Below, one piece after another: positions 5,394 to 17,601 of a DNA stretch of 64,000 nt. The notes under the pieces are model-generated. The model saw only the letters and a list, made by a program, of their open reading frames with translations, was not told where the DNA came from and ran no database searches. Positions within the stretch are counted from its first letter, which is position 1. Each line of letters opens with the position of its first letter. A program made the translations under genes and the position numbers. The stretch is from sequence record MW879344.1; one strand, written 5' to 3'.

Positions 5394-7340
5394 TTATTGA
5401 TATTGTACAATTACCCGACCATTAAATCGTAAATCTGGCGATGCAGGTACTGATAGTACTGCGTTGGTAGGTGAAATAACCACACTATCAACTTCAACAG
5501 GACTATAATTCACCCCACTTAATTCTTGCACAGAAACTTGTTGTATATTGGCATTAGTAATAGTAAATGTATAGTAAGAACCATTTAATACCCAATTAGC
5601 TGTAGTAAATGTTGTAATAACTCCACCACCGGAACCAACAGTCGTCCATGTTCCATTTGATTTTTGGATTACAGTATTGCGTTGAGTACTGTAAGCAATC
5701 ATCCCATCTTCACCTTTAGAATCATCAATTGGATTCATAACAGGTAATGCAAAACCATTTCTTGTCATTTTAGCAACAACTTGTGGTGATGCACCATTAT
5801 ATAATATGAAATTATAATTACCAGTACTTCCAGTTTGACTAAATGTTAAACCATTGGTTTCATCTATGGTTGTTGGTGAATTCGCTGAATTAAATCTAAT
5901 AGTTGAACCAGTGAATATTAGTAAATTCGCTGAATTTTGTAGATATGCATCAGCAGCAAATGTTGAAATTCCATTAAATCTACTTTGAGAATTGACAACA
6001 ACTTTATCACCAGATGCAGAGGCATCGTTACCTAATGTAGTATTTCCATTAACGGTATGATTTCCAGTAACTACTACGTTACCATTAAAAGTACTTAAAC
6101 CCTGTGATAGACTTACATTAACTGCACTATTTGATACAAAATCTATTTTATTTCCAGTTACATTTATACCTAATGCAGTATTACCAGTAGCAGAAAATAG
6201 AATATTTGGTGCAGCAGCAGTACCAGTACTTGGATATAAAATTAATTGTGTAGGTGAAACCCGTAATCTTTCAACACCACTTGCAGAGAAACCAATACTT
6301 CCGGTAGCTGGTCTAAAGATACCAGTACTTGTCTCTGACCATTTAGTAGGATCATTTCCTGGATTCGTGGTAGGGTTAAATGGGTTGCTGTTAAACGCAA
6401 TAGCAGGGGCAGCAGCGGTTCCATAAACAACACCTAAGCGACCATCACCTATTCCTCCATCGTCGTACATGGAGTCTCCTGTGCGGCGTAGACCGTCTTG
6501 CACAAGGTTATCTATAATAGTTTGTACTGTACCAGCACTTGAAGAAAATGCTCTACCTGAAGTAGTTGCATATGTTCTATCGAATGAAACTGCACCAGCA
6601 CTTATACTAACACGACTTTGACGTAAACGTGTTTGTTTGGAACCATCTGAAATAATCCAATCACCATCCGTCAACGCTAATTCAGAAGACTTATCTACAT
6701 CAGTAGTAAATGCGGCTGTTAACGTTGTGTCAGTAGATAATGATGTTAAACCTTCATGACCAGTACTTGGAATACTTGCTGTAATTATTCTTCCAAAAGC
6801 GGCAATAACAACTTTACCAGTACTTGGGTTCATTGGATCGGTATCAACATAGTACTTAATTTGAATCCAATTTCCTTGTCCACTTGGATTAGTAGGTATA
6901 AAGGTAACAGTTGGAGTTGTTGGGTTATTTGCTTTAAAGTGTGCCTGTGCTGCATCATATAGGCCACGCACAATATAGTACTGTCCTGAATTAGCTGCAA
7001 TGGGTGCAGGAAGTTTATCATATTGTCCACCCAATGGTGGATCAATGTCATCAGTTAATGGTGAATATGTACCAATATACTGCATACCACTTGTTACTGA
7101 ATCTGGTAATTGGGATGTAAGTAATTGTCCATTTTCATCTAAATTTGCGAAACGACGATAACTCACTGAGCCATCAGTAAACTCTAGAACACCTTCAAAT
7201 GATTTCCATTCTGAGTTATATCGAATCATACCTGCTCTTTCAGCAGATGTTGTTTGTTTTGTTGGTGCTTTAGGTAGTTCTAAAAAGTATTGACTTTCAA
7301 TTATAACACCCTCTGCACCTTTAATTCTAGTAGCACTCAT
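5394..7340 (-). CDS. Putative tail fibre / virion appendage protein
   Basis: 648 aa, Thr/Gly/Ser-rich; GMIRYN and GMIAYS...W modules typical of fibres; TAAATA at 7372-7377 upstream. Confidence 0.65.
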   Translation of the reverse strand: MSATRIKGAEGVIIESQYFLELPKAPTKQTTSAERAGMIRYNSEWKSFEGVLEFTDGSVSYRRFANLDENGQLLTSQLPDSVTSGMQYIGTYSPLTDDIDPPLGGQYDKLPAPIAANSGQYYIVRGLYDAAQAHFKANNPTTPTVTFIPTNPSGQGNWIQIKYYVDTDPMNPSTGKVVIAAFGRIITASIPSTGHEGLTSLSTDTTLTAAFTTDVDKSSELALTDGDWIISDGSKQTRLRQSRVSISAGAVSFDRTYATTSGRAFSSSAGTVQTIIDNLVQDGLRRTGDSMYDDGGIGDGRLGVVYGTAAAPAIAFNSNPFNPTTNPGNDPTKWSETSTGIFRPATGSIGFSASGVERLRVSPTQLILYPSTGTAAAPNILFSATGNTALGINVTGNKIDFVSNSAVNVSLSQGLSTFNGNVVVTGNHTVNGNTTLGNDASASGDKVVVNSQSRFNGISTFAADAYLQNSANLLIFTGSTIRFNSANSPTTIDETNGLTFSQTGSTGNYNFILYNGASPQVVAKMTRNGFALPVMNPIDDSKGEDGMIAYSTQRNTVIQKSNGTWTTVGSGGGVITTFTTANWVLNGSYYTFTITNANIQQVSVQELSGVNYSPVEVDSVVISPTNAVLSVPASPDLRFNGRVIVQYQ

Positions 7341-7407
7341 TTAATTTCCTCAGATAATGGGTTATATTCTGTATTTATCCAGTACTCCAAAAATAAAAGC
7401 TATCTTA

Positions 7408-7911
7408 TTAATCAGAAGTGTAGAAAATTCTAACGATTGGACATAGTGTAGAATTTGTAACACTACAATTGTAATGAGTATTTTGAATATACACTTTATT
7501 TGGATTTGGACTCATTGATACAAACATATCATATCCTGACGTTACACCTACTGTAGTTGAAACATCCACACTATTATTTGTAGTACTATCAGTGTATACG
7601 TAACATCCCAATGGTATAAATGAAACAATGTTTACATTAGTTTCGTTGGTAAAAATATCTTTCATTCTCATAAGCATACCTGCATTATTCGAACGAATTG
7701 TCAAATCATGATTATCTTGTTGGAAAACATGAAGTACTTTAACATCTTTTGATTTTAATATTAATGATGGTGGTGAATACAATCCATTATCATGATTTGA
7801 AATTGAGTTTCCAGAATCAGGAGAAATAATCACTGGCGGTAAATTTCCGATAAGTGAACCAGTGAATTCTACATCCCCATCAATTTTTATATCAGTTTTT
7901 ATATTATACAT
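7408..7911 (-). CDS. Small fibre/RBP-like protein with MYNIKTD N-terminal module
   Basis: N-terminus identical to that of the next gene; GGAG SD; ISPDSGNSISNHDNGLY fibre-type repeat. Confidence 0.6.
   Translation of the reverse strand: MYNIKTDIKIDGDVEFTGSLIGNLPPVIISPDSGNSISNHDNGLYSPPSLILKSKDVKVLHVFQQDNHDLTIRSNNAGMLMRMKDIFTNETNVNIVSFIPLGCYVYTDSTTNNSVDVSTTVGVTSGYDMFVSMSPNPNKVYIQNTHYNCSVTNSTLCPIVRIFYTSD
7865..7911. repeat. 47-bp exact direct repeat, copy 1 (copy 2 at 8430-8476)
   Basis: AATTCTACATCCCCATCAATTTTTATATCAGTTTTTATATTATACAT occurs at both sites and encodes MYNIKTDIKIDGDVEF on the - strand. Confidence 0.95.
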
Positions 7912-7924
7912 AATTTACTCCGTT

Positions 7925-8476
7925 TTAATTTGATGTTGTTATAAAATAATCAATAGCATATGAAACATCCCAACCATTAGATCTTGAATAATATGTATTT
8001 GAATCAACGTTAAACAATTTAGTAGCTATTCCTTGGATAAAAATAATAGAAACTAACGTACTACAAAATATACCATTAATAATAGCAGTATTTTCATATG
8101 TAGTAATATTATATGGTAAAAAATTATTATTATTATCACATGGAATCATACTTAAATAGGCATTTAAAACTTGCATTTTGTTAGTAGATGATGGGTATGT
8201 GCCAACTCCACCAAAATAGTCATCCCCGATGGTTATTTTAAAAATTTCATTAGAACCTTGAATAATATGTGCTCTAGGTGATGATATATTCGATGATTCA
8301 TTTGTTGGTAAATTTACCGCGAATGTCTTTAATGTAGTTGTTAATTCATTATTAGAATTCATGGATATTAAATTATTACCTGTTTTAGAAACTTTAGCAC
8401 CTGGTATATTGCCAATCAATTCTCCAGTAAATTCTACATCCCCATCAATTTTTATATCAGTTTTTATATTATACAT
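7925..8476 (-). CDS. Small fibre/RBP-like protein with MYNIKTD N-terminal module
   Basis: Track start 8506; a GAGGA SD and identity with the 7911 N-terminus support 8476. Confidence 0.6.
   Translation of the reverse strand: MYNIKTDIKIDGDVEFTGELIGNIPGAKVSKTGNNLISMNSNNELTTTLKTFAVNLPTNESSNISSPRAHIIQGSNEIFKITIGDDYFGGVGTYPSSTNKMQVLNAYLSMIPCDNNNNFLPYNITTYENTAIINGIFCSTLVSIIFIQGIATKLFNVDSNTYYSRSNGWDVSYAIDYFITTSN
8430..8476. repeat. 47-bp exact direct repeat, copy 2
   Basis: Identical to 7865-7911. Confidence 0.95.
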
Positions 8477-8491
8477 TGTGTATATCCTCAT

Positions 8492-8523
8492 AAAAGAAAA
8501 GGCCAATAATGAATATTGACCTT
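8492..8523 (-). terminator. Terminator-like hairpin directly downstream of a TAAATA element
   Basis: - strand AAGGTCAATA-ttcat-TATTGGCCTT-ttctttt; the stem closes with a G-U pair only on the - strand. Confidence 0.6.
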
Positions 8524-8542
8524 GTATTTAATTGAAATTTGA

Positions 8543-10210
8543 TTACGCAAAGGCATTATTAACTGTTGTACCAACGAGTAAAGCTACTGTAATATTTGCT
8601 TGATTAGGCACTCCACCACCAACTGGATATGGTGAATCAGTAACAACATCAAATCCTAAAGCGGGAGTTCCGTGGATAAAGGTAGTGATAGTAACAGTAA
8701 TAGTACTAGCAGTAGTGTTAGTAATTTGACCTGATACCGTTGTTGGTATTGGGTTTCCAGCAGAATCTAGATAATACTGTTGTAATTGGGTTTGTAATGA
8801 ACTATATAAACCAACATTATTATATCTTGTAACACCTGTTGGGTTTGTCATTGATATAGTTGTTTTAATTTTCATGCTTCCATTTGGATAAACCGTTGCT
8901 GAACTGAATAATGCTCCACTTGATGCAATTGCAAATTTAGGAATAACAGCATGATTTCCTGCAACATATAATCCTTTATTCGCTGTTGGGCTTAATTTAA
9001 GAATATTATATTGTTCAGTACTTAAATTGACACGAATATCGGTGTTTTTTGGGTTGCTATTATTTTGTGAACGGTATATACTGTCATCTGGCAGTAATTG
9101 AATGCTAACTGGACGAACAAATAAACCAGGATTATCACCAACGATTAAGTTTGTTAATTGGTTTTGGTCATCAGCACTAACAACAACATCACTTACTGGA
9201 GCAGGTGCTACATATAAACCATTATCATGTTTTACTAATGCATTATTAGCATCAGTTGATATGAGTACGGGAGAATCTAAAGTTAATACTTCTTTCCAGT
9301 TCCATGTTTTCTCATCAGTTGGCTGATTGTTTTCGACATTCAAGAATAGTCTACCATCTGTATCGGATGCTAAAGAAAATCCAGAATATGAACCAATTAC
9401 TTGATTCTTATAACCTGATTGGAACCATATTACCGTTCCGTCTTTTTGACTTGGTAATGATGCTGGCATACCAATACCAGAACTTTTATATCCATATACA
9501 GATGAACCACCGTAACCAATACTAATATCATTAGTTAAAACGCCTCCAGTTTGTACGAAAATATTAGACAAATACTCAGTACTGTTAACAGTTTCCCAAC
9601 TAGTAGGCATTGCATTTAATGTACCAGTTCTAGTCTTAATTTGATTTTTAATGCTAGAACCATATTGGTCAGAACCATAACCAGTTTGTACAACATATGT
9701 GGTTCCATTGGTTGAGTACTGCACTACTTTTAGAATTACATCACTAGTTGATGCGAATGGTGCATGATATTGATATTTTTCAGTACTAGTTGTAAGTCCA
9801 ACAACAGAATATGTTCCAGTACTTGTTAATGTATCATAATCTGTTTTTTCTGTAATGAAAATCATTTCAGAATCTGATGAGGCATATAGGCCACCATCTG
9901 AGTTTATAATTAGTTTATTGTTTGGTTCTTCACTAAGTTTAGCGGAAAGTGTTACACTATATCCAGTTCCTTCTTGTGCAGATAATCCTTCTCCGGCCAT
10001 AACGGATGATGATGGAGGAATAACTTTAAGTTCACCTTCAATTAAAAATAAACCATTTTCACCTTCGGCTATGTTAATTTTTAATGGATCTTCAACAGTC
10101 CCAGTTCCTGCGATTCCATCAGTCGTGTTTGTTGGGGGAAATTTCCCAAATAACTCACCACTGTATGTTACATTACCTATAACATTTATATCTGTTAATA
10201 TATTGTACAT
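8543..10210 (-). CDS. Tail fibre / RBP-like protein
   Basis: MYNILTDINVIGNVTYSG N-terminus; repeated S.D..N.L.....GLYV fibre segments. Confidence 0.65.
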   Translation of the reverse strand: MYNILTDINVIGNVTYSGELFGKFPPTNTTDGIAGTGTVEDPLKINIAEGENGLFLIEGELKVIPPSSSVMAGEGLSAQEGTGYSVTLSAKLSEEPNNKLIINSDGGLYASSDSEMIFITEKTDYDTLTSTGTYSVVGLTTSTEKYQYHAPFASTSDVILKVVQYSTNGTTYVVQTGYGSDQYGSSIKNQIKTRTGTLNAMPTSWETVNSTEYLSNIFVQTGGVLTNDISIGYGGSSVYGYKSSGIGMPASLPSQKDGTVIWFQSGYKNQVIGSYSGFSLASDTDGRLFLNVENNQPTDEKTWNWKEVLTLDSPVLISTDANNALVKHDNGLYVAPAPVSDVVVSADDQNQLTNLIVGDNPGLFVRPVSIQLLPDDSIYRSQNNSNPKNTDIRVNLSTEQYNILKLSPTANKGLYVAGNHAVIPKFAIASSGALFSSATVYPNGSMKIKTTISMTNPTGVTRYNNVGLYSSLQTQLQQYYLDSAGNPIPTTVSGQITNTTASTITVTITTFIHGTPALGFDVVTDSPYPVGGGVPNQANITVALLVGTTVNNAFA

Positions 10211-10226
10211 CTGTTATTATCCTCAT

Positions 10227-10258
10227 AAAAATAAAGGCCAATATGCAAATATTGGCCT
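10227..10258 (-). terminator. Terminator-like hairpin directly downstream of a TAAATA element
   Basis: - strand AGGCCAATAT-ttgc-ATATTGGCCT-ttattttt. Confidence 0.65.
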
Positions 10259-10272
10259 GGATATTTATTGAA

Positions 10273-10911
10273 TTATAGTATTTCGTCATCCCATTTTGCC
10301 GCATTACGAACTGTGTCGTAATCTTCAGCAGCAGAGATAGCAGCTTTAATTGTACGTTCTTTAATGTATAAAGAGCTAGTATAATCAAATAATTCTTTTA
10401 CTAATTGCTTAAATTTAACTAAATCGAATGGAACTAAAACACCATCTACTGTTTCAAGTTCAATTGAACTTGGGAAGTTAGATTCATCTATTAACGCAGC
10501 ACTGATAAACAACTGGATATTAGCACGTGAAGTAGCACCTGCATTATATGAATGACCATCGAAGGTAAAATCATTATAATACATGGAATCACGTTTAGCA
10601 GTAACACGACCAAGAAGGTCGGTTTTAATATCATCTAATGGCATACGTTCATAAATGTAAGTATTAGTAACTTCAACTGCATCTTCATCGAAAGTAACAA
10701 CCTTTTCTTTGAAAATCATGAACTCACCTGTGTTTTGATAAACATCATTTTGAGTCCAGAAACCTTCATCACGGCGAGTATCCAAGTCTAGCTTGGATAT
10801 GTCGCCATATGTATTACCTGTTTTATTACCACGAATATTGATTGGGTAGGTAATTGTTTTAAGAATTACCCAATCGCCTGATTCATTTTTAACTACTGAT
10901 AAGTAAATCAT
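10273..10911 (-). CDS. DUF4376-like tail-fibre-associated protein
   Basis: C-terminal KRDSMYYNDFTFDGHSYNAGATSRANI...W pattern; located between fibre genes. Confidence 0.6.
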   Translation of the reverse strand: MIYLSVVKNESGDWVILKTITYPINIRGNKTGNTYGDISKLDLDTRRDEGFWTQNDVYQNTGEFMIFKEKVVTFDEDAVEVTNTYIYERMPLDDIKTDLLGRVTAKRDSMYYNDFTFDGHSYNAGATSRANIQLFISAALIDESNFPSSIELETVDGVLVPFDLVKFKQLVKELFDYTSSLYIKERTIKAAISAAEDYDTVRNAAKWDDEIL

Positions 10912-10926
10912 CTTTATCTCCTACTA

Positions 10927-13900
10927 TTATGGACGTTGTGCAATGAACACATCATATTTAGAACCAATACCACAGTACACTACTTGACAGATGCTTACAG
11001 CGTTTGGATCAGTATTAACTTCACCACCAATGATTGCATAAGCAGTATCCCATGTTACAGTATGTCCACCAGTAGCATCTTGTGTTACATAGATGAACCA
11101 TGAACCTGCACCATTCACACCAGTAATTGGTTGAATTGAGGTATTTGCAGTTACGTTTACGTTATAAACGTTTGAAGTACCATCTGGAGTCCAAGTTGCA
11201 GTACTTACTGTTTCAGCAGCATGTTGAGCAACAAAGTATGTTCCAGTTTTGAATGATGTTGTTGTTAAGTTAGATAAATCAGCAGTTAAAGTACCAGTGA
11301 TTGTAATATTCTTAACAGTTGTATTACCAATAAAGTTACTTGTAGCATTAACAGTTAATGTATCTGCCGCTGCATCACCAATAACAGTGTTACCATTAGC
11401 GGTTAATGCACCAGTAATTGTAGCACTATTCAATGTAGCTAGACCAGAAGTACTCAAAGTGGTTGCAGATGTTGCAGCTAATGTTGTTGCACCAGTTACA
11501 CCTAATGTAGTGGTGATTGAAGCACTGTTTAGTGTTGCTAATCCTGAAGTACTTAGAGTACCAGTGATTGCAGTATTCCCAGCATTCAATCCAGCTAATG
11601 TACTTAAACCAGTTACACCTAATGTAGTCCCTACTGTTACACCAGCAGATGTAGTTACAGATTTGAAAGTTACATCAGAGTTAGTTTGATTCAATGTACC
11701 ATTAATTACACCAGTTACTGTAAAGTCACCATTAGTTACTACGTTACCGTTAACTTGTAGGTTGTTATTTGTACTTGATGGTGCACCAATGATTGCTGTT
11801 GCAGCAGTTAGAGAAGTTGCAGCGGTCAATGAACCAGCAGAACTAATATTTCCTGAAGCAGTTACGTTACGTGGTGAAATATCACGTGATGTTAAGTCAA
11901 TCTGTGCGTTTATAATACCAGTTACATCTAAATCACCAGTGATGATTGTATCACCAAATACATTTAGAACTTTATCAGTATCAGCAGTACCAGTACCAAC
12001 TTGTAATGCTTGAATCTTAGAAGTACCAGATCCATTAACAGTTAGAGTACCAGTCATTGCAGTATTACCAGTTACACCTAAAGTAGTTGTAATAGAGGCA
12101 CTATTCAATGTAGCTAGACCAGAAGTACTTAGAGTACCAGTGATTGCATGGTTACCAGAATTTACAGCAGCAAGTGTTGTAATACCAGTTACACCTAAAG
12201 TAGTTCCTACAGAAATTGCACCAGTTGTGGTTACTGAAGCAACATTCAAAGCCGCAGAACCTAAGTTTAATCCACCAGCAGGGGTGAATGAACCATTAAC
12301 AGTTACATCTCCAGCAAAAGTACTTGTAGCATTAACAGTTAAAGTATCAGAGCTTGCATTACCTAGAGTAATATTACCATTTGCAATTAATGCACCAGAT
12401 ACAGTAGCACTATTTAAAGTAGCTAACCCATTAGTAGTTAAAGTACTTAGAGTTGTTGCACCAGATACACCTAGAGTGGTAGTTACCGCAGCACTATTTA
12501 AAGTAGCTACACCAGAAGTACTTAGAGTACTTACAGAAGTATTTCCAGTTACACCTAATGTTCCGGCAATTGTTGTATTTCCAGAGATTTTTGGAGCACC
12601 TGTGATAACACCAGTAGTTAGAATTAAATCTGCACCAACGGTAGTTTTACCAGTACTTTCTAATGTTGCAGCTACTAGATTTGTTGCACTTAAATCAAAT
12701 GCACCATCAACAGTTAGGTCACCAACAACATGAGCATTACCAGAAGATGTTAATGATTTAACAGTTACATCAGCAGTACTTAAATCCACAGCACCAGGGG
12801 TTAGAGTACCAGATACTGATAAGTTACCAGTAATTGCAGTATTCTTAGCGATTGCTACAGTTGCATTCGTTGAAGTAATATTTCCGTTAAATGTTGCAGC
12901 ACCAGTTACTGTTGCAGCAGCGAAAGTCGCTGTACCTGTTCCAGTTAGTGTACCGATACTAGCGGTTGCAAGAGTACTTGTACCAGTAGCATTTAATGTA
13001 GTTATATCAGCAGTATTGATTGTTGCAGTAACACTTTGCAATACTGGTAATGTGTTTGTATTAACATTATCAGTAGCTGTGAATGTAAGAGCCGCAACAC
13101 TGGCTGAACTTAAACTAATTTGTCCACCAACAATTACGTCACCATCAAAAGTTGCTTGTTCTGTAGTATGAATAGATTTAGCTTCAATATCTACATCTGA
13201 TAGATCTAAACCACCAGCAAGAATTAATGTTCCACCAACTGTTAAATTACCAGAAGTAGTCACTGGAGAAGTAAAGTTTACTGCATTAGTACTATTTCCG
13301 ATACTTGAAGTTACTAAAGAACCCGCAGTAGCTACACCAGTTACTGTTGCAGATGCTAATGTTGCTAATCCAGAAGTACTTAATGTAGAAGCTGAAACAG
13401 CACCTAATGTACTTTGACCAGTTACGCCTAAAGTGGTTGAAACTGTAACTTTATTAGGAGCAATATCTAAACCATCAACATTTGCTTCAGCCGTTACACC
13501 AGTTGTTGTACCAGTTACTACAAGATCGTGAATAGTTGTTGTTCCTGTGCTTCCACCGAATGAAGTATTACCATCAACTGTTAATCTTCCACCAATAACT
13601 GCGTTATTTGTTACTGCGAATGCAGTATTTGGACCAGTTAATGATGCTCCAGCACCTAAGAAATTACCTGTCGCACTAACATCACCAGTAGAAGATATAG
13701 AACCGGAGTTTAGTGTTCCACTAATTACGGTATTTTTACCAATTGCAACATTTGTGTTAGTAGAAGTGATAGATCCGTTTACAGTTAGAGAACCAGTACT
13801 TTCTACGGTAGCACCCTTAATTGATGTTGTTGCATTTACAGATTGTGGTGCAATATCTAAACCATCAACATTTGCTTCAGCCGTTACACCAGTTGTTGTA

Positions 13901-15399
13901 CCAGTTACTACTAAATCTTTTACTTGTAAAGTTTCGTTGAAACTACCATCACCTTGGAATGTTGAAATTCCATTAATTTGTAAACTTTCACCAGTAAGTT
14001 GACCAGTTGATTTTACTTGTGCACCTTGCACCATTGCATCGGCAATTACAGAGTTTGGTGTAATATCTTGACCAGTTACATCAACTGTTAAACCAGTCAC
14101 GGAACCAGTAAACTCAACATCATTAAGTACTGATTTTCCTGCAACAGTAAGTTGTGCACGAGTTGTACCAGTAGTGCTGTTACCTTTAATATCAAGATAA
14201 TCAATACTTGCTTTACCAAGTGCAGTTAGACCATAGTCAGCATATGTAACATCACCAAAAATTACGTGACCTACAGTAGCTTTTTGACCTTGGAATTCGT
14301 TAGAACTTACTTTATAAGGTTCAATACTTGATTTAATATCTGATGGACGTGCTGGGTCATTGTATGTAAATTGAACAACACCAGAAGCACCAGCAACATT
14401 ATAAGTTTGGAAAGTAGCAGAACGAGTTGTACCAGTTACGTTACCACTGAGAATAACACTGTTTAGATTACTTTGACCAGTTACTGTTAAGGTTGTAAAA
14501 TTGCCATTTGCAATAGTATAATCACCACTTAAAGTACCATTAATAACTACATCTTGGAAAGTTGCAGTTGTACCAGTAGGCATTGAAAGATTGCCTTTTA
14601 AGTTGGTAGTTCCTTCTACAACTAGACTTTCTAATGTGGTTTCACCAGTAGCGTGTAGGTCGCCTTGAATGTCAGTTGCAGCTTTAATTGTTAAAGTATC
14701 TGATGAATCTGAACCAATTGTTACGTTGTTATTAAAATTGGATGTAGCATTTACAGTTAGAACATCAGTACTCGCGTCACCTAAAGTAACGTTATTTTTG
14801 AAATCTGAAGTTGAATTAACAACTAGATTATCAGTAGTATCTTCACCAACGGTAACGTTATTTTTTAAGTTAGTTGTTGAATTAATTGTTAGTGTATCAG
14901 TAGCATCTTCACCAACTGTTACATTATTTTTAAATGTAGAAGTAGAGTTAACGGTTAATGCATCAGCAGCAGCGTCACCCACAGTTACATTATTATTGAA
15001 TGTAGCTGGTGCAGCAAATGTTGAAGTTGCATTGACAGTTAATGTGTCAGTACTAGCATTACCTACTACTGTGTTTCCTTCAATTGATACATTACTTTTT
15101 GCAGTAATTGGAGCATTAAATGTTGATGTTCCATTTACAGTAACAGAATCGGCGTCGGAATCACCAAGAGTTGTGTTACCAGAAACTTGAACATTGTTCA
15201 ATGCAGCAGTACCAGTAGAGTTAACATCAGCTAGATTAGCAGTACCTGTGACTGTAATCTGTGTAAATGTAGCATTAGCAAAATTAATCGTACCACCTAC
15301 AGTAAGATTATTTGTAATGACTGCACTACCTTTAACCAAAAGATCTTTAGAAATCGTTTGATTACCAGATACGTCAAGATCCGTTTTTATAGAATACAT
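10927..15399 (-). CDS. Very long beta-repeat tail fibre (~1490 aa)
   Basis: Thr/Gly/Ser/Ala-rich repeats (GDA.TD.LTVNATS.F; TTLGVTG); C-terminal QDATGGHTVTW cap. A GGAGGG SD supports the MYSIKTD start at 15399 rather than 15450. Confidence 0.75.
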   Translation of the reverse strand: MYSIKTDLDVSGNQTISKDLLVKGSAVITNNLTVGGTINFANATFTQITVTGTANLADVNSTGTAALNNVQVSGNTTLGDSDADSVTVNGTSTFNAPITAKSNVSIEGNTVVGNASTDTLTVNATSTFAAPATFNNNVTVGDAAADALTVNSTSTFKNNVTVGEDATDTLTINSTTNLKNNVTVGEDTTDNLVVNSTSDFKNNVTLGDASTDVLTVNATSNFNNNVTIGSDSSDTLTIKAATDIQGDLHATGETTLESLVVEGTTNLKGNLSMPTGTTATFQDVVINGTLSGDYTIANGNFTTLTVTGQSNLNSVILSGNVTGTTRSATFQTYNVAGASGVVQFTYNDPARPSDIKSSIEPYKVSSNEFQGQKATVGHVIFGDVTYADYGLTALGKASIDYLDIKGNSTTGTTRAQLTVAGKSVLNDVEFTGSVTGLTVDVTGQDITPNSVIADAMVQGAQVKSTGQLTGESLQINGISTFQGDGSFNETLQVKDLVVTGTTTGVTAEANVDGLDIAPQSVNATTSIKGATVESTGSLTVNGSITSTNTNVAIGKNTVISGTLNSGSISSTGDVSATGNFLGAGASLTGPNTAFAVTNNAVIGGRLTVDGNTSFGGSTGTTTIHDLVVTGTTTGVTAEANVDGLDIAPNKVTVSTTLGVTGQSTLGAVSASTLSTSGLATLASATVTGVATAGSLVTSSIGNSTNAVNFTSPVTTSGNLTVGGTLILAGGLDLSDVDIEAKSIHTTEQATFDGDVIVGGQISLSSASVAALTFTATDNVNTNTLPVLQSVTATINTADITTLNATGTSTLATASIGTLTGTGTATFAAATVTGAATFNGNITSTNATVAIAKNTAITGNLSVSGTLTPGAVDLSTADVTVKSLTSSGNAHVVGDLTVDGAFDLSATNLVAATLESTGKTTVGADLILTTGVITGAPKISGNTTIAGTLGVTGNTSVSTLSTSGVATLNSAAVTTTLGVSGATTLSTLTTNGLATLNSATVSGALIANGNITLGNASSDTLTVNATSTFAGDVTVNGSFTPAGGLNLGSAALNVASVTTTGAISVGTTLGVTGITTLAAVNSGNHAITGTLSTSGLATLNSASITTTLGVTGNTAMTGTLTVNGSGTSKIQALQVGTGTADTDKVLNVFGDTIITGDLDVTGIINAQIDLTSRDISPRNVTASGNISSAGSLTAATSLTAATAIIGAPSSTNNNLQVNGNVVTNGDFTVTGVINGTLNQTNSDVTFKSVTTSAGVTVGTTLGVTGLSTLAGLNAGNTAITGTLSTSGLATLNSASITTTLGVTGATTLAATSATTLSTSGLATLNSATITGALTANGNTVIGDAAADTLTVNATSNFIGNTTVKNITITGTLTADLSNLTTTSFKTGTYFVAQHAAETVSTATWTPDGTSNVYNVNVTANTSIQPITGVNGAGSWFIYVTQDATGGHTVTWDTAYAIIGGEVNTDPNAVSICQVVYCGIGSKYDVFIAQRP
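13460..13521. repeat. 62-bp exact intragenic duplication (second copy 13850-13911)
   Basis: Encodes VVTGTTTGVTAEANVDGLDIA twice, 390 bp apart. Confidence 0.9.
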
Positions 15400-15500
15400 G
15401 TATGTAATCCCTCCGTTGGATTTAAAATATGGAAAACTATCCCAAATCATTTATTTCAAGTATTTATTGGGATGGGTTATATTGATCAGGGTTATATATG

Positions 15501-15541: not shown

Positions 15542-16402
15542 TTACTTACCACTTAGTACAACTTTACCACTGAATGTTACATTGGATTTTAAAGTAACAT
15601 TACCAGAACTATCAATTGCAGTTTCAACTGCAACCAATGCATAAGGGGAAGTACTAGTTGCTGAATCAACAGTGTTTTGATATACTGTAATAAAGATTGC
15701 ACCAGGAACTTGACCGTGAGTAGCTTGTGGGATTGTGATTGTAAATGCATCACCAGATGCTGTCCAGTTAGCCTTATTAATTAACTGACTGTATGGGGTA
15801 GTCATACTTGTTGCTCCTATAATTACTACGTTAACGTTTGAAGATGGTGCTGAGCTAACCGTTACTTTAATGTTGCCAGTACTATCAACTTCTATATCAG
15901 CATTTTCAACTGCACCATTAGTTTCTTGTAGCTGAACAATGATATTAGAACCTCTACCATGTGTTGATGCAGGTAATGTAAACACAAAGTTTCCACCTGT
16001 TGGAATAAATTCTGAAGGTGTTGCTGATGTTGTAGTTACATATGGTGTATCTGTTGTTTGTGAGCTAAAAGGTTTCCATATTCCCAAATCTTTTACATAT
16101 ATTTGTAATATGTTTGTAGCATCCACTTTATAATATACATCACCGTCTACGCCTAAGCTTGGGTCTGGATCTGTTGTTCCGCGTAATGCTGAACCTGATC
16201 CACCTCCACTATGTGCATTAAAATATGCTAGAGTAACTAGGTGTGTACCGTCAGATGGGTCTGCCGCACTGATTGGAATAAGACTTGTTCCTTGATAGTT
16301 ATATGCCTTAACTGCACCATTTTCAAATGCAAGTTTAGAACCATTTTTACCAAGGATAAAGGTCTTTTTCATGGTTCCTTCTAAATTAGAAAAAACTGCC
16401 AT
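15542..16402 (-). CDS. Virion structural protein with two tandem ~80-aa beta domains
   Basis: Repeats FTLPASTHG...DSTGNIKV and ITIPQATHG...DSSGNVTL; AGGAG SD; TAAATA at 16435-16440. Confidence 0.55.
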   Translation of the reverse strand: MAVFSNLEGTMKKTFILGKNGSKLAFENGAVKAYNYQGTSLIPISAADPSDGTHLVTLAYFNAHSGGGSGSALRGTTDPDPSLGVDGDVYYKVDATNILQIYVKDLGIWKPFSSQTTDTPYVTTTSATPSEFIPTGGNFVFTLPASTHGRGSNIIVQLQETNGAVENADIEVDSTGNIKVTVSSAPSSNVNVVIIGATSMTTPYSQLINKANWTASGDAFTITIPQATHGQVPGAIFITVYQNTVDSATSTSPYALVAVETAIDSSGNVTLKSNVTFSGKVVLSGK

Positions 16403-16482: not shown

Positions 16483-17601
16483 TTAGATATTATCTTCAAT
16501 TGGTGTGATTGGAAGCTGTTTAGCTATAGTCACAATAATTGTCATCATACCAGTACTACTATTGTTCACAGATTCGTTAAAGATACAAGAAATTATTTCT
16601 TCTTCTGTGCTTATATCATGATTAACTTCGTTAACAATATAACGACTTGCATGATTTATATCAAAATAATCTGGTGGAGCAATTATAGTACCACCGATTT
16701 CTGATTGTGCTAAACCACCAAATCGTACTGATAGATCAGTTACTGGTGCATTATATGCAGTACTTACATTTACTTCTATATTAGTTACCAAATATCCTGC
16801 TGGACATTTGCCTATTACTAGTAATGCGTTTTCATATGAAGTATCTATAACATTTTTAATTGCATAAATGTTATTCGCATCAGATCCTGCTGGTCCAATA
16901 TCACCATCATCACCTTTAATACCTTGTGGTCCACGGAATAATATTCCAGGACTCCATGATTTTTGCCCATTACTCGCTTCTATCACATAATATAAGAAAC
17001 CAGTTTCGGTATTATAGAAAGTATATCCAGGATCTAAATTAGTTATTGATGGGAAGGTATCACCTTCTGAATTAATAATGAATTGGCCTTGTAAGCCTCT
17101 GTCACCTTTAAATTGATAAGGTCCATTCCAATCTGTAGTTGCTAAATCATAAATCCAAATAGTACCATCGGTAGTTCTATAAAATGTATAATTATCAACT
17201 AAACCCGTTGTAGGGAAAGTGGTTCCAGATGAATCAATTGTAAATGATTTACCTGCTGCACCTTGTGGCCCACGACCAAACGGTGCACTTATCCAAGTAC
17301 TTGTTGATTGATTAGCATCATTTGTTTTAAAGTACAATGATACAGGATCAACTAAACTTAAATATGTCCAACCTTGAGGTTTATCTTTATTAAAATCAGC
17401 ATTTGGAATTTCAAAGCCGATTTCGTTTGGATAAAAGTTTGTCCCATTAGCACCATCATGACCAACTACAAGTCCCAAATCTTCAATAGTGTTGTCATCA
17501 TACGTTACGATCAAATGTCCTGCATTATTAATAACTAAATTCTTAATACCTGAGCAGTTTGAGCAGGATGATGAAGACCCATTATTAAATGAAATTGTCA
17601 T
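16483..17601 (-). CDS. Collagen-like (Gly-X-Y) fibre/whisker protein
   Basis: GRGPQGAAG, GDRGLQGQ and GPQGIKGDDGDIGPAG segments separated by small beta modules. Confidence 0.65.
   Translation of the reverse strand: MTISFNNGSSSSCSNCSGIKNLVINNAGHLIVTYDDNTIEDLGLVVGHDGANGTNFYPNEIGFEIPNADFNKDKPQGWTYLSLVDPVSLYFKTNDANQSTSTWISAPFGRGPQGAAGKSFTIDSSGTTFPTTGLVDNYTFYRTTDGTIWIYDLATTDWNGPYQFKGDRGLQGQFIINSEGDTFPSITNLDPGYTFYNTETGFLYYVIEASNGQKSWSPGILFRGPQGIKGDDGDIGPAGSDANNIYAIKNVIDTSYENALLVIGKCPAGYLVTNIEVNVSTAYNAPVTDLSVRFGGLAQSEIGGTIIAPPDYFDINHASRYIVNEVNHDISTEEEIISCIFNESVNNSSTGMMTIIVTIAKQLPITPIEDNI

Follow-up and report, generated by a model that had tools for sequence, protein, structure and literature searches.

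A shared N-terminal head on four tail appendage proteins of Erwinia jumbo phage pEa_SNUABM_49: a probable attachment handle for alternative fibres

A common head on four appendage proteins

We analysed a 64,000-nucleotide stretch (hereafter the window) of the 358,049-bp genome of Erwinia jumbo phage pEa_SNUABM_49 (pEa_49; MW879344.1, Eneladusvirus BF), which it matches with 100% identity, window coordinates plus 124,000 giving those of the record. Within it a cluster of tail appendage genes encodes four proteins of 167, 183, 555 and 1490 amino acids (aa), orf167, orf183, orf555 and orf1490, which all open at residue 1 with a related head of about 22 residues. This head is probably an N-terminal attachment handle for alternative tail appendages, a reading that we place no higher than probable because the docking itself is inferred. 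The head would dock each protein to the tail or baseplate, and the handle family would span RaK2-like jumbo phages of the genera Eneladusvirus, Mimasvirus and Asteriusvirus. The comparisons described below support the view that the head is a portable N-terminal module carried by unrelated bodies; a literature search found no description of the head or of the gene cassette in which three of its four copies lie.

The four minus-strand open reading frames (ORFs) lie at 7408-7911 (orf167), 7925-8476 (orf183), 8543-10210 (orf555) and 10927-15399 (orf1490) and were confirmed with the N-termini first quoted for them; their starts are also those picked by the GenBank annotators for pEa_49 and its relatives. 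The largest, orf1490, is a long tail fibre (phrog_4549, E = 2e-237) that GenBank labels 'long tail fiber proximal subunit', and a GGAGGG ribosome-binding site precedes its start at 15399. An extension of this frame by 17 codons to 15450 (window 15400-15450, minus strand) is in frame only in the BF group, i.e. Serratia phage BF and the Erwinia phages closest to it; as it is out of frame in L067, an uncultivated 358-kb relative, it does not belong to the protein. Searching the entire genome with a profile of the four heads recovered these four N-terminal copies only (E 2e-20 to 2e-18), all in the one appendage cluster, together with one weak match to an internal shaft repeat of orf1490 (E 0.03). 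The claim of the initial annotation that four proteins share an N-terminal peptide is thus borne out, as is the claim that two of the genes share 47 identical base pairs: positions 7865-7911 at the 5' end of orf167 equal 8430-8476 at the 5' end of orf183 (both minus strand), and this repeat is maximal because both flanking bases differ. It is nested in a 74-nucleotide (nt) repeat, whose second copy is 88% identical and whose third copy, in orf555, is 66% identical. The head of orf1490 is more weakly related to those of the three short genes (12/23 identical, pairwise E 0.02).

Behind the heads, orf167 has a linker motif and a body of about 120 residues without detectable relatives, orf183 a body of about 140 residues, likewise with no relatives detected, and orf555 four linker-motif repeats and a C-terminal body. 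These bodies had been described as unrelated, which holds for orf167 and orf183 beyond residue 42 (Smith-Waterman z of about 0) and for each of them against orf555 (z below 1). It needs correction at two points: the likeness of orf167 to orf183 does not stop at residue 22 but reaches residue 42 (28/42), and a second motif, S.D..N.[IL].....GLY, is common to orf167 and orf555, with four copies in the latter. Pfam returned zero matches at E <= 0.1 for orf167, orf183 and orf555, none of which matches the knob family PF16532 either, and for orf1490 a sub-threshold bactofilin-like repeat only.

Two head types, two genomic hot spots and many bodies

The heads fall into two types, L and S, which have their first 8-10 residues in common and differ consistently over residues 11-25, each version being conserved across genera. 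The L-type head (15334-15399, minus strand; residues 1-22 of the long fibre and its most conserved segment) opens the fibre of about 1500 residues and is nearly invariant across 59 jumbo-phage records, whose host genera are Erwinia, Serratia, Yersinia, Pectobacterium, Cronobacter, Xanthomonas, Klebsiella, Salmonella and Escherichia. Among 14 IMG/VR relatives the first 50 residues of the long fibre show 81% mean identity versus 17-75% for its other segments, and the first ten residues are 92% conserved. In fHe-Yen9-04 (Yen9-04, a Yersinia phage of the same genus), CBB, GAP32 and XbC2 there is a single head copy per genome, on the long fibre. Coliphages fEgEco12 and WPEC5 have two L-headed fibres in tandem. 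Two tandem long fibres are also seen in L067, where the second (1606 aa; L067:5057-9877) lies upstream of the ordinary one and has a variant L head starting MHSIKTDL.

Beyond position 10 the S-type head is conserved in residues of its own, followed by a proline at about position 25 and the linker motif S.D..N.[IL].....GLYV. Its genes occupy a defined site. In Yen9-04, CBB, GAP32 and XbC2 the gene order is thymidylate synthase, orf648 homologue, DUF4376 gene and long fibre, the orf648 homologue and the DUF4376 gene being immediate neighbours. At this site, flanked by the orf648 gene, just upstream of which it lies, and the DUF4376 gene for the fibre chaperone, the three short genes are present in all seven BF-group genomes compared (eight GenBank records). 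As these extra genes are restricted to the BF group and missing from the site in these four relatives, the 2.9 kb from 7341 to 10272 represent an accessory cassette of the BF species. A search of 50,697 phage records with orf555 returned only the eight BF-group records, and one with orf167 returned the BF-group records and head-only matches in five Asteriusvirus records, orf183 not having been searched separately.

These five Asteriusvirus records (PBECO4, CRJP21, UB, ELP-22) are those in which the S head occurs outside the BF group. At the same site, with the hairpin of the DUF4376 gene before it and the orf648 homologue after it, they encode an S-headed protein of 455 aa in which about eight linker-type repeats follow the head and an Sf6-type tail-needle knob (PF16532, E = 2e-27) forms the end. 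The knob identifies the protein that bears the S head in Asteriusvirus as a true knob-tipped fibre. In Sf6 the proteins of this knob family form trimers; this and the collagen triplets of P0095 (see below) are indirect pointers that the head-bearing appendages are probably trimeric as well. A profile built from the three S heads and run on 1.84 billion representative proteins gave only 12 matches at E <= 0.001; those that are not repeat artefacts start at most three residues from the N-terminus and belong to proteins of differing lengths and bodies. One of them, P0091 (405 aa), is a metagenomic homologue of orf555 whose gene immediately precedes those of an orf648 homologue and thymidylate synthase, and hence lies at the same hot spot. 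Another metagenomic protein, P0095 (881 aa), carries collagen triplets, Big_2 and a GH5 cellulase domain behind its S head, and its gene directly follows an orf286 homologue, i.e. it takes the usual position of the long fibre. In L067 a gene for a 637-aa protein with a degenerate S-like head lies at the chaperone/orf648 hot spot (L067:15153-17066). One head family is therefore found at two genomic hot spots on many bodies. The proposal that a common anchor is fitted to alternative bodies accordingly gains support from the three bodies in the window, the Sf6-knob fibre of Asteriusvirus and the collagen/Big_2/GH5 enzyme of a metagenomic phage.

In the scheme that we propose, the L type would start the long fibre in every member of the family and the S type would start short accessory fibres at one hot spot; expansion of this site in the BF species would have yielded three S-type genes, for proteins of 555, 183 and 167 aa whose bodies are unrelated. 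The bodies of the short genes are presumably alternative receptor-binding tips. BF-group phages infect both Erwinia and Serratia, and the short fibres may add to this cross-genus host range.

The four proteins had further been assigned to the same virion socket, which gains no support here: each of the two head types is conserved in its own right, and a binding partner was found for neither. On balance we favour related but non-identical sites for the two types, with competition for a single socket as the somewhat less probable arrangement. A stricter form of the latter, in which all four proteins compete for exactly one socket and virions are mosaic, with a long or a short fibre at any of at least six equivalent positions, strikes us as rather doubtful. 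The residues common to both types at the very N-terminus would suit it, as would the S-like-headed GH5 protein of L075, which lies in the gene position of the L-headed long fibre, directly after the orf286 homologue. It is, however, hard to square with the consistent and conserved difference over residues 11-25 and with the relatives that lack S genes, which are complete phages, so that the long fibre can fill its sites alone. Further, electron cryo-microscopy of phAPEC6 has revealed several distinct fibre-attachment rings on this tail type (PMC7247149), and hence several kinds of site exist.

Recombination, repeated upstream units and strain variation

The S-type genes resemble each other also in what precedes them. 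A terminator-like hairpin (GGCCAA...TTGGCC stem, then a U-run) lies directly upstream of the ribosome-binding site of orf183 (8499-8523, minus strand, fold z = -3.7), and its paralogue follows the chaperone gene (10235-10258, minus strand) with the ribosome-binding site of orf555 directly after it; the ribosome-binding site itself, ATGAGGAT, is identical upstream of both genes. The same arrangement of hairpin and ribosome-binding site is found upstream of the S-type gene in CRJP21 (gp302) and L076, and a homologous hairpin follows the DUF4376 gene in Yen9-04, CBB, GAP32, XbC2, CRJP21 and L076. In relatives without the cassette this hairpin ends the fibre-chaperone operon and then comes the ATAAATAC-containing element for orf648. 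Terminator-like hairpin, ribosome-binding site and head together make up the repeated unit of orf555 and orf183, and the S genes would be expressed through terminator read-through, hence at a lower level than the long fibre.

The region is 98% identical in Serratia phage BF and five other Erwinia phages, and the strains differ in an informative manner within the heads of orf167 and orf183. At nucleotides 28 and 36 both heads read A and G, respectively, in pEa_49; in BF, pEa_12, 19, 44, 47 and 50 both have G28 and A36, and the identical run is 53 nt. That two identical changes arose independently in both paralogues along a single branch is not credible at about 2% divergence, and the pattern indicates gene conversion between the two heads over a tract of at least 9 nt. 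The shared head DNA would then serve as a substrate for homologous recombination, through which gene conversion would keep the orf167 and orf183 heads identical and bodies could be exchanged. Of the two outcomes originally envisaged for the exact repeat, swapping and deletion, recombination thus finds backing in the form of gene conversion, whereas deletion does not: all seven BF-group genomes (eight GenBank records) keep the 183-aa gene. The deletion junction was also absent from public Logan contigs of relatives, which are of low depth and cannot show rare variants. A public 367-nt contig (depth 3.6; run X1, contig record 2) joins 8423 to 7859, i.e. leads back by 565 bases, exactly across the 53-nt repeat of the BF-type strains and in the orientation of a duplication or circle. 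We do not count it as evidence of recombination, as an artefact of the k=31 assembly explains the junction equally well; the same run has no contig on the orf167 body (7168-7837).

A bolder interpretation would make hairpin, ribosome-binding site and head a capture-and-swap cassette that recruits foreign receptor-binding bodies to the two fixed hot spots, with the heads docking not on the baseplate but on the fibre-base rings of the sheath seen in phAPEC6 and CBB. If this interpretation were right, the 119-nm whiskers would be the long fibre and the short fibres would sit on equivalent ring positions; as a whole we consider it unlikely. The phAPEC6 structure has six short fibres on the baseplate besides fibre bases at three sheath rings (PMC7247149). 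In CBB the whiskers measure 119 nm and the baseplate fibres 29 nm. Judged by T4 fibre dimensions, a fibre of 1500 aa would suit the whiskers better than the short fibres of the baseplate, which is only a lead.

Crude ratios of nonsynonymous to synonymous polymorphism (pN/pS) over the seven strains are 0.14 for orf555, 0.21 for orf167, 0.11 for orf212 and 0.19 for the C-terminal part of the long fibre, and by this measure orf555 and orf167 are under purifying selection. For orf183 the ratio is 0.77 (17 nonsynonymous versus 6 synonymous changes), and the gene, with 16-22 differences in 552 nt relative to pEa_49, varies more than any other in the cluster. Such a rate would be expected either from diversifying selection on a receptor-binding tip or from relaxed constraint.

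Presence in virions and points against an attachment handle

Published mass spectrometry (MS) allows the presence of these proteins in virions to be assessed in part. The liquid chromatography-tandem MS table for virions of pEa_12, 47 and 50 (PMC7760394, Table S5) gives names and masses only, and our assignments were made by molecular weight alone. On this basis the entries of 147, 68.5, 29.7 and 40.2 kDa fit orf1490, orf648, orf286 and orf372, respectively, and entry 16, a 59-kDa 'hypothetical protein' with 4, 10 and 30 peptides, agrees with the orf555 homologue. This homologue is the only annotated 59.0-kDa protein in pEa_SNUABM_12; other 59-kDa open frames start inside longer ORFs, and one that was checked lies within the annotated terminase gene. 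Two further 'hypothetical protein' entries, of 20.1 and 18.4 kDa, are compatible with orf183 and orf167. For CBB, the virion MS of the CBB paper includes the homologues of orf648 (CBB_224), orf212 (CBB_225, with 68% coverage), orf1490 (CBB_226), orf286 (CBB_227) and orf372. Hence, the long fibre is a virion component and the orf555 protein very probably is one, while the masses matching orf183 and orf167 are not unique to them.

Several observations weigh against the head being an attachment handle for alternative appendages: 1) Molecular weight is the sole ground for the assignments above, and the 20.1- and 18.4-kDa entries have at least one other annotated candidate each, which makes the match ambiguous. 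2) Between long fibre and thymidylate synthase, not one gene position is represented in the virion MS list of phAPEC6 (PMC7247149), and phAPEC6 is not among the records with an S head. 3) No socket of known type is apparent in the modelled neighbours. The orf286 model has no gp9- or gp10-like match (Foldseek returned nothing at E <= 0.001 and VIA-align only Ig-like folds, with Z <= 6.4), and a gp10-like domain was not seen in the model of orf372, a weak one with a predicted local distance difference test (pLDDT) score of 59, which contains a jelly-roll only. 4) The co-variation of the heads amounts to a single strain split. 5) The pN/pS of orf183 could reflect decay. 6) The head profile matches internal long-fibre repeats in five genomes (E 0.003-0.14), and in view of this weak likeness to shaft repeats a purely structural role as a 'first rung' is possible.

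The last point can be developed into an explanation of its own, in which the head would nucleate folding or trimerisation as the first rung of a beta-structured fibre, would be shared because the fold begins alike in all these proteins, and would leave attachment to the virion to another part. The head indeed looks like the shaft repeats in its alternating hydrophobic pattern and glycine turns, and BLAST aligns the orf555 head with an internal segment of orf1490. We regard it as quite unlikely all the same, as the internal matches score only 13-17 bits, well below the 55-72 bits of the N-terminal ones, the first ten residues are far better conserved than shaft segments, which fall to 17-50% in the same 14 relatives, and the head is always at residue 1 and recurs on proteins without a shaft (orf167, orf183) and on an enzyme (P0095). 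Very unlikely, finally, is the notion that orf183, and perhaps orf167, are decaying duplicates of fibre genes without virion function, whose heads are kept by mutual gene conversion: their small size, the want of homologues outside the BF species among the 50,697 phage records (orf167 query) and of Pfam domains, the orf183 ratio, the ambiguous MS matches and the precedent of KP32- and KP34-like phages, whose second receptor-binding proteins (RBPs) can be truncated yet retain a conserved peptide (PMC6872550), would all agree with it, but both ORFs are intact and of unchanged length in seven of seven strains, orf167 has a low pN/pS, MS entries compatible with both exist, and a receptor-binding tip under diversifying selection would likewise show a high nonsynonymous rate.

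Comparison with other multi-fibre phages

The shared-head design is already known from other multi-fibre phages, and the present peptide and its phages are a new example of it. Conserved N-terminal peptides were reportedly described as docking secondary RBPs in the K1-5/K1E/SP6 and G7C systems by Leiman in 2007 and Prokhorov in 2017. Docking by such short peptides is documented for K1-5, SP6, KP32, KP34, G7C and Menlow (Latka 2019, PMC6872550). As in the K1-5/KP32/G7C type, the short N-terminal peptide is constant and the remaining protein exchanged, there are several RBPs per virion, RBP genes break an otherwise syntenic structural cluster, and truncated variants occur. There are also differences: the peptides of that type dock on a T4gp10-like domain of the primary RBP or adaptor, none of which was found in the modelled neighbours orf286 and orf372; in the phages studied here the primary long fibre itself carries a homologous head; and these are 350-kb myophages rather than podophages, with peptides that have no sequence similarity to theirs.

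The initial annotation had likened the arrangement to the branched or multi-RBP system of RaK2 and K64-1. Larger N-terminal domains dock fibres in CBA120 and RaK2 (PMC10253068), and RaK2 belongs to a related jumbo lineage with many appendages that combine conserved N-terminal parts and variable bodies. However, the RaK2 fibres have N-terminal domains of 100-400 aa like D1/XD of the CBA120 tailspikes, with a 105-aa anchor on gp528 (PMC10253068), whereas the head described here measures 22-25 aa. The CBB paper, moreover, reports that RaK2 lacks a homologue of CBB_226, the counterpart of the long fibre, and tblastn searches with the L head (59 records returned) and with orf167 gave no RaK2 or K64-1 record. 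The comparison therefore survives as an analogy of design and not as kinship. No depolymerase domain was detected by Pfam in the four head-bearing proteins of the window.

In T4, the proximal subunit of the long tail fibre, gp34, attaches by its N-terminus to gp9. The long fibre of the present phages resembles it as a long, probably trimeric fibre on a contractile tail, with a dedicated chaperone gene adjoining and a plausible N-terminal attachment, but homology is not detectable by Pfam and the orf286 model gave no sign of a gp9-like protein. Also, we know of no family of extra fibres in T4 that share the gp34 N-terminus. Recombination at conserved motifs in the distal fibre and adhesin genes of T-even phages was reportedly described by Tetart et al. 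in 1998. Branched LtfA/LtfB fibres are found in DT57C (PMC4728585). In common with the T-even phages and DT57C, short conserved blocks in the fibre genes would act as recombination linkers for swapping receptor-binding parts; unlike in them, the linker would here be the 5' end of the gene with the upstream hairpin and ribosome-binding site, and the gene conversion runs between tandem paralogues within one genome. Likeness to the Sf6-type knob fibres (PF16532) is confined to the S-headed protein of Asteriusvirus, the three short proteins of the window giving no Pfam match to it.

Phages of this kind are being developed against fire blight (Erwinia amylovora), and their appendage genes are annotated almost throughout as 'hypothetical'. 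The head, its two hot spots and the accessory cassette point to genes that probably set host range, and in 350-kb myophages, whose attachment logic to our knowledge had not been worked out before, the head would give a defined means of studying and swapping receptor-binding parts. They also supply a testable lead on the identity of the CBB and phAPEC6 whiskers. The co-varying heads, for their part, would be a small and clean case of concerted evolution that keeps paralogous anchors compatible with one partner.

Neighbouring genes and a promoter-like element

Two neighbouring genes, 10273-10911 and 15542-16402, had been put forward as adaptors for the heads, and neither appears to be one: the former encodes a DUF4376 chaperone homologue and the latter an appendage with its own N-terminal module. 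The product of the former, orf212 (minus strand), was rejected as an adaptor on its match to the DUF4376 family (PF14301, E = 9e-14, above the curated cut-off). DUF4376 proteins are tail-fibre chaperones of Alteromonas phages V22 and A5 (PMC10579305). The gene lies directly downstream of its fibre gene, a position conserved in all relatives; by analogy, orf212 is more likely to act at the distal tip of the long fibre, as a probable chaperone or cap, than at the heads.

The second proposed adaptor, orf286 (minus strand), has 79 homologues with an invariant extreme N-terminus, and its model (pLDDT 84) shows two immunoglobulin-like (Ig-like) domains behind the N-terminal module. These about 65 N-terminal residues recur on a 713-aa 'colanic acid-degrading' protein of fEgEco12 and WPEC5, which makes orf286 an appendage with a shared anchor of its own. 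With this module and generic Ig-like matches only, orf286 was dropped as a gp9/gp10-like socket. The gene for the 713-aa protein lies just upstream of the orf286 homologue (L026:8826-10967 and L026:10982-11881); the orf286 module is thus a second shared-anchor family, with a second insertion hot spot between orf372 and orf286. A head-bearing fibre gene always directly follows that of orf286, also where the phage shares only 42% identity, and in view of this constant adjacency a functional link is possible.

Next to it, orf372 (16483-17601, minus strand; phrog_13565) is a tail protein with three short runs of collagen-like triplets, two internal repeats of about 55 aa and a C-terminal jelly-roll. 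The C-terminal domain is the only usable part of its model (pLDDT about 65-80 there, against a mean of 59), and the jelly-roll matches chains from two phage capsids, one of the Ralstonia phage GP4 (Z 10.2) and the other the cement protein, a trimer, of the Helicobacter phage KHP40 (Z 9.9). Sequence searches of the PDB with orf286, orf555 and orf372 found nothing, and the ESM Atlas gave sub-threshold leads only, for orf286 and orf555.

At the other end, the appendage cluster is closed by orf648 (5394-7340, minus strand; phrog_14293, E = 0), a structural, fibre-like protein with homologues in Yen9-04, CBB, GAP32, XbC2, L076 and L067. Upstream of it lies a promoter-like element (7359-7386, minus strand) that contains ATAAATAC and is nearly identical in four other phages. 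In the window and in L009-L012 alike, ATAAATAC is followed by ATATAACC upstream of the orf648 homologues. The ATAAATAC element may represent the late promoter of this phage group; similar ATAAATAC motifs are also present upstream of orf1490 and orf286.

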